64,000 bases of DNA from Oopsacas minuta. Taxonomy: Eukaryota > Animalia > Porifera. Below, piece by piece: positions 58,205 to 63,432 of the stretch; the first letter of the stretch is position 1; each line of letters starts with the position of its first letter. The translations under genes and the position numbers were made by a program. The notes under the pieces were generated by a model, which made no database searches, was not told the DNA's origin, and saw only the letters and a program-made list of their open reading frames with translations. The stretch is from NCBI GenBank assembly GCA_024704765.1, contig JAKMXF010000222.1:1-64000 (forward strand), read 5' to 3'.

Positions 58205-60626
58205 TTAAGGTTTTATAATAGCCAGTAATAAATCTCTGTAATCTCCTGACGTATCCCCATCTACCATGATGTGTAGAGCTTTGTTATATTTCGCGAGGAA
58301 TGCCATCTTAATGTTACCCATGTCAATCTAGATAGGAGATAGAGTACAAGTAAAATATCATATGAATAATAATATACATGTATATACCTCTGCTCTGGAT
58401 ACGATTATTCTTATCAATTTCTTGTTATCAGTTCCTAAGCCTTTCATAGATGTGAATAGTTCATCTGCGAAATATTCCGCGGGATTTAGGACACATTTAA
58501 CAACTGAGATGTATGCTTTTTTCGTGTGACCAGACATTTCGCGTTCTATCGAGTTCAGTATACTTCTCTGTGCAATCTATCCATACAATTAATTAAGAGT
58601 GATGTCATACAAATTACAGCTATTTAGAGAGACCATATTGAATCAAGTAATAAAGCTTATAACCTCTTCATAAGCTATGAATGTAGCTCTAAGCTGAGCA
58701 TGGCTACGTGATGCCAAGACCTTTAAGAACACAGACTCATCTGTACCCCACTTCTTCTCTCCAGCCTAGATACATAATGTGTTAATTGGTATGCTATATT
58801 ATATTATTATTATTATTATTGTAACTTACTGAGTATAACTCTTCTGCTTCTTTTCTAGCTTTACCCTGATCAACCTCAGGTTTCTCACTTCTCTGTCCCT
58901 ATACATAATATATATATATACATATATATATATACAACGAGTTATTTGTATCTTAGCAATGTCTTATGAACAAAAACCGCATTTCTTAAAGGTTAAGCTA
59001 ACAGACAGAATAACAGAATTCCTTACAGCTAGTATACATGAGAGAGAAATTAGAGATAAGTTGGATGAGAAGATTATACAAGAAGTGGAGAGGATATTGG
59101 AGACATGTTCTAATGGCGAAATATACGAAGAAAGCAAAGGTGAAGAATTCCGCGAGCTTAAATTCAGCTCTCTCAGGAAGGTATTCGAGTTATACAAAGA
59201 ATCAGAAAACCTAGAGTCCCAATATTTCCTAGATAAGATCTACATACATCAGCTGATGAGAGGGAGTGACGTATACTTCACAGCTCTTAAGAAGCCCGAT
59301 CGGAACCCAGAGCTAGTAGCACGTCTGGCTAAGATACAACAGAAATTAGACAACCAAGCATACTCCAAGATGGTAGCAAACCTGGCAAAAAGGAATGTAG
59401 AACAAGGTACTCTAGCAATAGACATGAAGTCTCTCAATATTCAAGCCATACACGCTTTCAACATTCTTCTAAGCTTTGTGTGTGCATTTGTATTCGGGTT
59501 TGCTGCAGGCTACTACAATGGACTAGAGCATGCTCTGAGTGCTATTATAGGAATAACACTGTGTATACCTGTGTTACTAGCTGATATATACTTCCTATTG
59601 AAGTATTATGAAGACGGAGCTAGAATAATAAATGAGAGAGAACAGGCTATTACGTCATCTAGTGTAGTTGATAAGAAGAACCAGTAGTATATGTATATGT
59701 ATTGAGATTATTAGTATAGTCAACACTTGTTATATCGTAATACCCGCTTCAAAACGAAGTAATTATCGGGTCGTTGAGCTTCGAAATAACGGGAGCTGAT
59801 TGTATACGTATTAATAATTACTAACAGTGGATAAAGATACCAACAACTTCCGGAGAGGTCCACTAGTATCCCCTGTAATATCCTCATCTAGTCTCCTACG
59901 GAATTGTTCCATATAAATCTCATTAATAGCTTTGATCTCATCATTAGTTCTAGAAGAGAGTATCTCTATGAGAGCATCTTCATCTGTACCAGCTCCCTAT
60001 AACATTAGGAAATTTATAAGTTATAGCGGAACCTGCACAAACAGGGCCTGTAAAACCGGAAACTTCTGGAAACGGAGTGACAATAAATTCCCGAATTCCT
60101 AGTCTCATACAAATGAACTTCCGAAACGGAGTCACATTTCAGGGTCCCTGTACCCATTTGCGGAGGTTACACTGTAGTTCACATACCTTCATAGCTTTAT
60201 ACAAGAGCTTAGCATCATACAGTGCTGGGGGCTCCATCAGTGCTAGAGCTGTCTCCTCGAAGTTGCCACTAAGATCAGACTTAAGATCCTTAATAAGATC
60301 AGATCCTGTGATTAGCTTATACTGCTGTATTATCTCCTGTCTCTGTGAGGATGATCTATTAGCTAGTATGGTTATTATAGTCTCTTGGTCTGTGCCTATA
60401 AATTGATAAACAAAAGAAATAGAATAATCAACTCTACTAATATTACCAAGTCCTTTGACTGCATTCTTAAGAGCCATGACGTCAGCCTCTGCATGGAAGC
60501 CTGGGAAGGTAACAATAGTAGGATAAGGAGAAGTAGGTCCCACATAAGATCCTGTATACTACATAACATAATACTCATAATACACTCGTACTCAGTATTA
60601 TAATGGTTATAACTTACTGTAGCCAT
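58205..60626 (-). CDS. Annexin (four-repeat core, short N-terminus), about 8 coding exons
   Basis: Repeats [63 protein letters not shown] and [30 protein letters not shown]. The 9-nt first coding exon (MAT) splices in frame to [14 protein letters not shown]. Confidence 0.95.
58908..58934. repeat. (TA)n microsatellite between the annexin acceptor site and the TMEM199 start
   Basis: tatatatatatacatatatatatata read directly. Confidence 0.8.
58959..59687 (+). CDS. TMEM199: TMEM199/VMA12 V-ATPase assembly factor, single exon, nested antisense in an annexin intron, 242 aa
   Basis: [37 protein letters not shown] matches TMEM199 ([30 protein letters not shown]). Two C-terminal TM segments. Confidence 0.93.
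   Translation: MSYEQKPHFLKVKLTDRITEFLTASIHEREIRDKLDEKIIQEVERILETCSNGEIYEESKGEEFRELKFSSLRKVFELYKESENLESQYFLDKIYIHQLMRGSDVYFTALKKPDRNPELVARLAKIQQKLDNQAYSKMVANLAKRNVEQGTLAIDMKSLNIQAIHAFNILLSFVCAFVFGFAAGYYNGLEHALSAIIGITLCIPVLLADIYFLLKYYEDGARIINEREQAITSSSVVDKKNQ
59715..59804. mobile_element. MITE-like element, family A, internally deleted copy
   Basis: Ends tatagtcaacacttgttatatcg / cttcgaaataacgggagctgattgta; internal aagtaattatcg..ttgagcttcg shared with the other copies. Confidence 0.75.
60022..60176. mobile_element. MITE-like element, family B, in an annexin intron (59997-60186)
   Basis: Right end cccatttgcggaggttacactgta and left end tatagcggaacctgcacaaacagg are imperfect inverted repeats (17/24 by eye). 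Internal direct repeat aacttc..aaacggagt.aca. Confidence 0.7.
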
Positions 60627-60689
60627 TTGATAGATTGTAAAGCTAATATAGTAGGAAGAGGTAATAAATCCCATGTAAGTAGAACGTCA

Positions 60690-60739
60690 CAACCGGATGT
60701 CAGAGACGCCAATAATGCTACCCGTTTGTGGAGGTTATA
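60690..60739. mobile_element. Fragment of MITE family B upstream of the annexin start
   Basis: cagagacgccaataatgctacccgtttgtggaggttata resembles the internal segment and TIR of the 48534 and 60022 copies. Confidence 0.45.
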
Positions 60740-60984
60740 TGGGGCTAGGAAATCGTTCTATATCCCGTTCCCACGGTTTCACTGTACCATATGTATCCGT
60801 AATAAACAAGATAAATTGTAAAGTCAAACTCAAATAATCTCAAATAAAGTTGAAAGAAGAAAGAAATGAAACAGCTTAATTAAGTGCAGCGAGGAAGGTT
60901 CTTTAACATGTGTACAGATTTGAATCTGCTTTTATCCTATATGTTCTTGCAGGTATGTACAATTAATTAATATAAGAGAATTTA

Positions 60985-62484
60985 TTAATTTTCATTGCTA
61001 ATAAGTTGAGAGATGGGAGGAAGTGTGAATAACGGTAGGTTAGAGTGAGGCTCTATCTGTGAGAATATTTGAGCAGGGCTAAGAGGATAGTAGAAGAGAC
61101 TAGGAGATATGTAATCAGGATTTATTGTACCTACTACTTCAGGGATTTCCTTATCGTACTCAAACTCTTCCTTGGGTGTTATGAGACTGTCCTCTATTCC
61201 TTGTACTCCTAGATCGCTGGTTGTATACTCCGGGTACTCTTCTAAGTACTCACTGCATTTTGTAGATGTAAGTGCGTGATGTAAGTAGATATTCTCATCA
61301 AATGGACTGCTCCATCCGTACTGGTTATGCTGTGAGAATATATCAGGGAGTGATGTCATGTTACCGTAGGAGGAACAGGAAGGTTGTGGGTAGAGAAATG
61401 AATCTATAGAATAAGTGCTAAATATATCCCTCATTTAAAAAATGATAATACGAACCTTGAGGGAAATCGTGTTGATATTCAGATAAATATTCCATATCAT
61501 CCTCTATCTTAACAAAATCAAGAATATCAGTCCTCCTTGATTCAACAAGTCCATCGCTACAAGAGGATAGTAGAATATCTCTGAGAGAGAATGTAGGGGG
61601 AATTTGTGAATTAATCTTTTAAGTTTGGAGAATGATCCATCTCTTTCTAAATAATCACTAACAGCGATATCTACAGCTTTCTTAGTGATAGGACGTGGTC
61701 TCTTACGCTTAATTGTATAGTTAAAATGAGGGAATTTCATTCGGTGGTTATTCTTCTCAATCTTAGCGAGTTCATTAAAATTTGATTTTGATTTAGCATC
61801 CAAGTTTTTCCACTTTTCTCCGAGTATTTTGCTAACTTTATTGTTGTCTAAGCAAGGGTTTTCCCTAAATAACAACAAAATAAATAATATTGACAGATAA
61901 TTTTATGAAAACTACTCACTTCAGAAGTTGCTTCCTTTGTCCCATACTGAATAGAATAAAACTATTTTTCGGTCTTTTTATACGTTGTGAGTCTTTATGC
62001 TCTTCCTGACGGTGTTTAGCCCTCCTGGAGCTGAGCAAAGAGGAGAGATAAGAGGAGGAATGCTGTGATTTATCTTCTGCATCCTTGGTGTCATTTATAT
62101 CAAAGAACAGATCGAATACGTGATTCTCCAGCTGGTATATAAAGTCACTACATGTTTCAAGAATGATAGCCTACAAATAAAACATAAATATAGAACATTC
62201 CAATTAGCCCTAATGGTTACCTTGCTGAAGTGTTTCCCATTTCCTGGACTTCTCTGTGTCTGGGGCAGCAGCATGTTCAAGTGGTGGAGAGATGAGTTGA
62301 GCTTTTGAACACGACATCTTTCACGATGACAATTCTTAACTCTTTTAGTTTCTATCTTATCGACCTCACTCAGTCCTGTAACTGAAGTATAGCATTTTTC
62401 AACGTGAGTGCACAATTCTGGCAATTCCTCATCCTCCGAACACAGAATTTCAGATGTTTTTGGTTGAAATTCCAATATATCCAT
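60985..62484 (-). CDS. Putative transcription factor with an N-terminal bHLH domain followed by a Sox-type HMG box and an acidic/Pro/Tyr-rich tail; 3' structure uncertain (may stop at 61504)
   Basis: Exon 62484-62221 gives KRVKNCHRERCRVQKLNSSLHHLNMLLP..KHFSK. A 50-bp intron leads to AIILETCSDFIYQLE...RIKRPKNSFILFSMGQRKQLL, and a 55-bp intron leads to KENPCLDNNKVSKILGEKWKNL..HRMKFPHFNYTIKRK. Both junctions are GT-AG and in phase. Confidence 0.82.
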
Positions 62485-62812
62485 AGCTACCTTCAATTCC
62501 TAATAATAAAGTAAATCTGCAGACTAAAATACTAACTGACTGACTTCAGAATCTATCCTAATTATACTTTTTATAAGGCCTATCTCTACAGAATCGGAAT
62601 TGTAAAGTAAAAATAGCTTCGAGCGAAGATATGGAAACTATCAAATTTGATTGGTTCCAAATTCGTCTAAAAAATCACTAAATAAAAAATATTTACAAAA
62701 TCCCACAAAAACAAATTCCCATAATAATTCCATTCTTAAGCTTTAGAATCACAATAAACAATCTTGTTAATTAAAGCAAATAAATTGTAACTAACTGAAA
62801 TACACATAAATC

Positions 62813-63247
62813 TTAATTCCTAGTCAGATAACTAATTAAGGACCACAACAGCATAGCAGCAAAGTAAAAGAACATAACAATATAGTAGGCAAGCTTGATC
62901 CAGCCCTCTCTCTGACACCTTTCAAGCTCTCTACGATTCATGATAGTAGTAGGATCATATATCCCAAGAGACCGCGAAGTTCTTCGTGTGTATCTGAACG
63001 CGTGATAAATCGTTATAGGAGCTGTGAGTAGAAGAGATACGAATTTGAAAGTTAGCAGAAATGTGAGTGAGAAAACAGCCTGTAGCGAGTACTCGGGTAA
63101 AACCAATGGATTAAGAGATTTACAAAGATCAACAGGGTTCTTAAAATCGTTTTTGAGTTCATCAAATGACACTACATTCCATATAGTAAGGAATATAAGG
63201 GCAATGTCTGCCAACAGTGCAGCTCCATACATAAATATGTGATACAT
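62813..63247 (-). CDS. CNIH1: Protein cornichon homolog (CNIH1-like ER cargo receptor), single exon, 144 aa
   Basis: FDELKNDFKNPVDLCKSLNPLVLPEY, GIYDPTTIMN and CQREGWIKLAYY. Confidence 0.95.
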   Translation of the reverse strand: MYHIFMYGAALLADIALIFLTIWNVVSFDELKNDFKNPVDLCKSLNPLVLPEYSLQAVFSLTFLLTFKFVSLLLTAPITIYHAFRYTRRTSRSLGIYDPTTIMNRRELERCQREGWIKLAYYIVMFFYFAAMLLWSLISYLTRN

Positions 63248-63280
63248 CGAGCTAGTGGTAAATTACGTCATAAATATTGT

Positions 63281-63432
63281 TAGTATACTCCTGTTATAGT
63301 TAAATCGAACGAGGATACATCTAAATACCCGCTTATATAGAAGTCTTAAATGATACAAATATGCCCCAAACCGCGGTTATATCTAAGTAATTATCGCGAT
63401 TTCTTGAGCTTCGATATAACGGGATATACTGT
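63281..63432. mobile_element. MITE-like element, family A, immediately upstream of cornichon
   Basis: Right TIR cttcgatataacgggatatactgta; internal gaagtcttaaat..atacaaat..cccaaaccg is nearly identical to the 57701 copy. The left end is approximate. Confidence 0.72.

Follow-up and report, generated by a model that had tools for sequence, protein, structure and literature searches.

A conserved four-exon gene of the glass sponge Oopsacas minuta encodes a bHLH together with an HMG box in one protein

The gene described here lies on the minus strand of a 64,000-nucleotide stretch of the Oopsacas minuta genome (positions 1 to 64,000 of contig JAKMXF010000222.1, GenBank assembly GCA_024704765.1), which we refer to as the window. 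It is very likely a single, expressed gene of four exons, and its product of about 447 amino acids a nuclear transcription factor that combines a bHLH with an HMG box. The four-exon, approximately 447-aa protein with its conserved C-terminal half is new here, and the public 291-aa model of the protein is truncated. The combination of the two domains is not new: it is already known from vertebrate MEIOSIN, with an HMG-like domain from STRA8, and from an entry in Table S14 of the O. minuta genome paper. What remains of interest is that a bHLH-HMG family is conserved outside vertebrates and may be linked to MEIOSIN.

Gene structure and the public protein model

The gene sits between a cornichon gene (62816-63247) and an annexin gene, and consists of the following features.

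62221-62484, minus strand: exon 1, with the ATG at 62484-62482 and 88 codons; a variable N-terminus, then the bHLH basic region, helix 1, and loop (from 62346). Basis: translation; Pfam HLH 1-29/53.
62171-62220, minus strand: intron 1, 50 nt, GT..AG, phase 0; interrupts the bHLH behind ...FSK of the loop.
61920-62170, minus strand: exon 2, 251 nt; bHLH helix 2 (62170-62126), a 48-aa linker, and the initial 20 residues of the HMG box (from 61981). Basis: translation; Pfam HMG_box 1-19/69; open over its full length and alignable in six orthologues.
61865-61919, minus strand: intron 2, 55 nt, GT..AG, phase 2; inside the HMG box, behind its helix 1 (...QLL/K), splitting a Lys codon (AA/G).
61456-61864, minus strand: exon 3; completes the HMG box, which ends near 61720, and continues with the basic tail YTIKRKRPRP, a helix that is conserved (AVSDYLERDGSF), and acidic sequence. 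Basis: Pfam HMG_box 22-69/69 (E 7.5e-10); alignment A3; AlphaFold2 pLDDT of about 90 over residues 158-215.
61596-61600, minus strand: run of C within exon 3, one base short in the window (assembly error), which yields a false stop at 61504-61506.
61404-61455, minus strand: intron 3, 52 nt, GT..AG, phase 1; missed by the earlier note on this DNA.
60985-61403, minus strand: exon 4; an acidic and aromatic C-terminal region with SLFYYPLSP, and the stop at 60985-60987. Basis: ORF; tblastn matches in six loci, four of them aligned with the window (alignment A4); depth of the RNA-like run X4 to about 60888.

The earlier note had proposed, from hand splicing, that a bHLH and an HMG box are fused in one protein through two canonical, in-phase introns at 62171-62220 and 61865-61919. 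Both introns are indeed GT..AG, with phases 0 and 2, and the spliced product is already public. A profile search with exon 3 against 1.84 billion representative proteins returned just two close matches, one of which is KAI6654243.1 (P0006, UniRef100_A0AAV7JZ12), a 291-aa protein of O. minuta that is letter-for-letter identical to window exons 1, 2, and 3. GenBank names it “HMG-box containing transcription factor.” Pfam finds both domains in it at full length: HLH at residues 47-103 (profile 1-53/53, 33.9 bits with a cut-off of 20.7, E 2.8e-8) and HMG_box at residues 152-220 (profile 1-69/69, 70 bits with a cut-off of 25.4, E 2.3e-19). The spacing between them is 48 aa; the earlier note put it at about 45 aa. 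Run exon by exon, Pfam gave the partial matches listed above, with one HMG_box piece closing exon 2 and the other opening exon 3; because the profile is split in this way, the box is continuous only across intron 2. The linker, encoded by exon 2, carries a conserved YLSSLL..RRA motif.

The public model departs from the gene at the C run. An extra base behind 61595 is present in same-sample DNA contigs (X1 and X3) and in some X4 contigs, a close relative (X5) has the extra base behind 61597, and all orthologues read KFPPxFSLRD in one frame at this position. With the extra base, the frame passes 61504 and leads to the donor at 61456/61455, the 52-nt intron, and an ORF ending at 60985-60987. KAI6654243.1 is truncated and lacks exon 4 because the C run of the window is one base short. 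Consequently, it is wrong from residue 261: its final 31 residues are an artefact, and about 190 real residues are missing. The corrected coding sequence comes, by arithmetic, to 264 + 251 + 410 + 416 = 1341 nt, or 447 aa, and exon 4 ends in an invariant LPLFxLPPISQLIS(N/H)EN (60988-61038). The searches and folding reported below used the public 291-aa protein and exon-by-exon references, not the 447-aa product.

The gene has very probably been listed before. In Table S14 (Additional file 3) of the O. minuta genome paper, LOD99_642 is annotated “Hmg box + bHLH” (PMC10280926), and we consider it very probably the same gene as KAI6654243.1. Its best (reciprocal) hit is fungal, from Capronia, and covers 25% of the protein (PMC10280926). 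The main text of that paper does not discuss LOD99_642, and the gene is absent from the ten O. minuta bHLH genes of Table S13 (PMC10280926).

RNA evidence for the exon junctions

Five public runs cover the stretch and were examined over 60500-63400. One of them, the bulk run X4, behaves as RNA: its depth is zero at intergenic 62537-62827 and dips at the intron bins, and it contains a spliced CT..AC joint in the neighbouring annexin gene. When the loose ends of X4 contigs were compared with the window by script, 16/16 letters matched across intron 1 and 14/14 across intron 2, the junctions for which the earlier note had proposed an RNA check. Across intron 3 (61404-61455), 13/13 and 10/10 letters matched. 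Each matching overhang string occurs only once in the window. Of the six overhangs, the one behind 61864 is noisy, with 3/13 letters matching. X4 consists of contigs with overhangs of 10-16 letters, not of reads, and therefore demonstrates the junctions rather than a full-length molecule.

Over 60888-62536, X4 is broken into hundreds of small contigs, which together reach a much greater depth than the neighbouring cornichon and annexin genes. As X4 contig depth cannot rank genes, this no more than hints at high expression of the bHLH-HMG gene.

The sequence just before the start codon (62485-62520) contains AG dinucleotides, in …aaggtag/ct ATG and in ttattag at 62501-62500, and one of the orthologous loci described below (L006) has TTAG right before its ATG. 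X4 depth upstream of the ATG falls from about 15500 at 62489 to 3550 at 62501, 54 at 62517, and 0 at 62534. The AG and the drop in depth before the ATG fit a spliced-leader acceptor at the start codon. Farther upstream, just upstream of the cornichon gene, a segment of about 45 bp (63319-63363, tctaaatacccgcttatatag...) is found on many different DNA contigs of the sample organism and its relative, with an approximately tenfold rise in depth. The segment is either a repeat dispersed in the genome or a regulatory element shared by several places; Rfam and tRNA scans gave no match, and it is neither a tRNA nor a member of an Rfam family.

Orthologous loci and selection

Six other assemblies were compared with the window (ERZ25072730, ERZ25071281, ERZ25069837, ERZ20067936, ERZ25072740, and ERZ25766962). 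An exon 1 query led to four ORF fragments in ENA assemblies, and the exon 3 profile together with the public model led to two more. The contigs concerned, L001-L006, have a common gene order of 14-3-3, Ig/fn3 protein, cornichon, bHLH-HMG gene, annexin, and Vma12. The orthologues that the earlier note had suggested looking for in related genomes thus exist as six syntenic loci with the same four exons and intron phases. Using tblastn with each window exon, all four exons were found in 6/6 loci. In every locus the introns are GT-AG, lie at the same three positions, and have phases 0/2/1, and there are no internal stops. The coding sequences are 436, 442, 442, 446, 440, and 438 aa long, and the codon split by intron 2 is Lys or Arg across the six.

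Synonymous differences from the window are saturated in 6/6 loci (about 0.5-1 per site). Non-synonymous differences per site, again across the six loci, are 0.01-0.09 in the bHLH and 0.00-0.09 in the HMG box, 0.05-0.19 in the tail after the HMG box, and 0.23-0.50 in the linker. In the close relative X5, with DNA about 95% identical, the bHLH is unchanged. Saturated silent sites together with two almost unchanged domains indicate strong purifying selection over a long time span. Both domains are strongly constrained by purifying selection in the seven assemblies, and that they are kept so strictly in sponge assemblies of deep divergence shows a need for both.

Two introns of the orthologous loci stand out. 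Intron 2 of L003 (L003:6565-6834) is 270 nt long, compared with 49-74 nt in the others, and contains a T run and repeated “ttaatacgaa..cgga taa” units; the extra length is probably a small inserted element. Intron 1 of L005 (L005:6271-6342) is 72 nt long, in frame, and free of stops. Since it is open, one prokaryote-style ORF call (P0155) spans exon 1, the intron, and exon 2.

On other related contigs, prokaryote-style calls assign the bHLH and HMG exons to two different ORFs. This could be taken to mean that a neighbouring bHLH gene and an HMG gene were wrongly joined by the gene model or by a chimeric assembly. However, exon 2 encodes helix 2 as well as the start of the HMG box (HMG_box 1-19/69) in one open frame in 7/7 assemblies, and neither domain is complete without it. 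RNA-like contigs also bridge both junctions, and in L005 a single ORF runs from exon 1 into exon 2 through the open intron. We rejected the reading as two neighbouring genes on these grounds and regard such an artefact as extremely improbable. The middle exon does carry the end of one domain and the start of the other, as the earlier note had argued, and we proceed with a single gene.

The bHLH domain

In a five-sequence alignment, the basic region (KRVKNCHRERCRV) and helix 1 show no variation, and the L005 and L006 copies are nearly identical. Within HRERCR of the basic region, E9, R10, and R12 are invariant in the aligned copies, in agreement with the claim of the earlier note that the E-box-contacting RER.R residues are kept. 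Exon 1 alone scores 24 bits against Pfam HLH. In the AlphaFold2 model of the public protein, helices span residues 32-72 and 84-111 with a loop between them, at low to moderate confidence (pLDDT of about 50-80 in the bHLH half). The bHLH part of the ESM Atlas model has TM scores of 0.66-0.76 to bHLH clusters. The domain thus has what defines a bHLH: Glu9, Arg10, and Arg12, two helices with a loop, and a match to Pfam PF00010 above the cut-off over its whole length.

Its placement among bHLH groups is less firm. The basic region shares with Twist the pattern R-x-x-x-N-x-x-RER-x-R-x-x-x-LN. Like group A proteins (Twist and atonal-related), the sponge protein has Arg at position 8, and it has no His or Lys at position 5 and no Arg at position 13. 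However, its similarity to solved bHLH structures falls short of significance and involves members of groups A and B alike, with E values of 0.065 for USF, 0.13 for Pho4, 0.19 for Twist1, and 0.53 for E47. Because this similarity is weak and mixed, the “group A-like” label of the earlier note holds only as a reading of the basic region.

The start of the basic region, KRVKNC (62340-62323), resembles the start of the HMG box, KRPKNS (61975-61958), closely enough to mislead MAFFT. The resemblance is probably due to chance.

The HMG box

The HMG box belongs to the sequence-specific class. It matches the whole profile, has the Asn of RPxN (RPKNSF), is modelled with the L-shaped fold of three helices, and is followed by the basic tail YTIKRKRPRP. 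The closest solved structures are SRY, SOX2, SOX17, and SOX18, with E values of about 1e-13 to 1e-14. When the public protein was modelled with AlphaFold2 from an alignment of 18 rows, the HMG part superposed on DNA-bound SOX/SRY boxes at 1.6-1.9 A, with TM scores of 0.75-0.84 and 37-41% identity.

Members of the Sox family proper share roughly 50% identity or more with the SRY box and carry the signature RPMNAFMVW. The sponge box falls below this, at 37-41% identity to SRY/SOX boxes, and its RPKNSFILF agrees with the signature at 5/9 positions. It resembles SRY and Sox boxes in the Asn of RPxN, the hydrophobic wedge (FI), and the basic tail after the box. It differs in context, as the sponge protein lacks the Sox group domains and Sox proteins lack a bHLH. 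In the whole protein library, the nearest named neighbours of the box and tail are fungal HMG proteins of the MATA type, from Naumovozyma, Aspergillus, Penicillium, Purpureocillium, and Sporobolomyces. These fungal proteins score weakly (about 40-46 bits), are similar in the box only, and have no bHLH. The term “Sox-type” used in the earlier note is therefore only approximate, given the identity, the signature, and the fungal neighbours. We can say with good confidence that the box is SRY/Sox/MATA-like and sequence-specific.

Proposed mode of action

A simple scheme would account for the two domains in one chain. The HLH may dimerise the protein, with the basic region reading an E-box in the major groove. 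The HMG box of each subunit could then bind and bend a nearby A/T-rich, Sox-like site through the minor groove. In this way, the dimer would recognise a composite, possibly symmetric, target site, and the C-terminal half may activate transcription or recruit cofactors. A dimeric major-groove reader and a minor-groove bender only 48 residues apart would offer a compact natural test case for composite-site recognition.

The bHLH could instead serve only to dimerise or to bind a partner, leaving DNA specificity to the HMG box alone. MEIOSIN provides a precedent, in that it binds STRA8 through its bHLH (PMC13637641). As this is mainly what the MEIOSIN bHLH does, its sponge counterpart may likewise work chiefly in protein interaction. 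Two unusual cysteines in the basic region (NCHRERCR) and the weak similarity to solved bHLH proteins, at E 0.065 or worse, point in the same direction. However, no part of the protein is conserved more strictly than the basic region, with E9, R10, and R12 in all aligned copies, and such conservation is hard to explain without DNA contact. We therefore regard a bHLH that does not read DNA as rather unlikely and retain DNA reading by both domains as the preferred scheme.

Comparison with known bHLH-HMG proteins

The earlier note knew of no characterised animal protein carrying both domains and treated a previously described architecture as grounds for setting its reading aside. The architecture has indeed been described, so that its novelty falls. 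Vertebrate MEIOSIN/BHMG1 has a bHLH and an HMG box, both regarded as DNA-binding domains (PMC13637641; PMC10267585), STRA8 joins a bHLH to an HMG-like domain (PMC13637641; PMC10267585), and Table S14 already contains the “Hmg box + bHLH” entry (PMC10280926). Mouse MEIOSIN (Gm4969, BHMG1) is 589 aa long, and its bHLH lies N-terminally, within aa 10-70, its HMG box C-terminally, within 484-534 (PMC13637641; PMC10267585); these bounds are those of deletion constructs removing aa 10-70 and 484-534 (PMC13637641). MEIOSIN was studied in vertebrates only, and more distant species were not analysed there (PMC13637641; PMC10267585). A literature search for “bHLH-HMG” and its variants gave no match, and BHMG1 was found in the literature as a gene symbol.

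The sponge gene, a mollusc cluster with HLH and HMG box, and vertebrate MEIOSIN might form one ancestral animal bHLH-HMG family, in which case the sponge protein might act at germ-cell or meiotic entry. The domain order is identical in mouse MEIOSIN. In an ESM Atlas feature search, the two nearest clusters were one from molluscs (HMG_box 100%, HLH 42%) and one of chordate “meiosis initiator protein” (HMG_box 97%, HLH 41%). Adults of O. minuta carry embryos all year, so that an adult RNA sample could contain germ-line transcripts. However, the Atlas scores are only 0.80-0.81, a level that shuffled proteins reach a third of the time, and the Atlas match to MEIOSIN is therefore a lead rather than a result. 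The bHLH part alone matches ordinary bHLH clusters in the Atlas. Among the 148 next-nearest HMG proteins after the two close ones, from the 1.84 billion representatives, none carried a bHLH by a family HMM of exons 1 and 2, by Pfam (on 122 of them), or by the bHLH pattern; consequently, the closest boxes do not include MEIOSIN-like ones. When exon 1, the public model, and its residues 44-222 were used in word searches, these returned solely the orthologous ORF fragments and the model itself, with no other HLH and HMG protein and no MEIOSIN or mollusc sequence. The two domains lie 48 aa apart here and about 410 aa apart in the mouse, the literature knows MEIOSIN from vertebrates only, and two very common domains can fuse twice. 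Taken together, we consider a single ancestral family unlikely and, on present evidence, regard the sponge genes as a bHLH-HMG family restricted to its lineage, with a possible relation to MEIOSIN.

The question matters because of what would follow. If the family is one and ancient, the two-domain architecture of the meiosis initiator would predate vertebrates, and even bilaterians, and would speak against a recently proposed origin of the bHLH module as a derived addition in vertebrates. Sponges would, moreover, gain a candidate for the control of germ-line or meiotic entry. The sponge protein is the sole non-vertebrate bHLH-HMG protein here for which gene structure, expression evidence, and comparative data are all available. 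With these in hand, a pre-vertebrate age of the MEIOSIN architecture becomes directly testable.

Of the known proteins, STRA8 is like the sponge protein in combining a bHLH and an HMG-like domain in a single germ-line regulator. It differs in that its HMG part is merely HMG-like, in its Glu-rich region and LXCXE motif, and in its restriction to vertebrates. MEIOSIN/BHMG1 has the same domain order as the sponge protein, with the bHLH N-terminal and the HMG box C-terminal in a single chain. In the mouse, the two domains are separated by about 410 largely disordered residues, eightfold the 48 of the sponge. MEIOSIN, known from vertebrates only, partners with STRA8 through its bHLH, whereas the conserved C-terminal half is the sponge protein's own.
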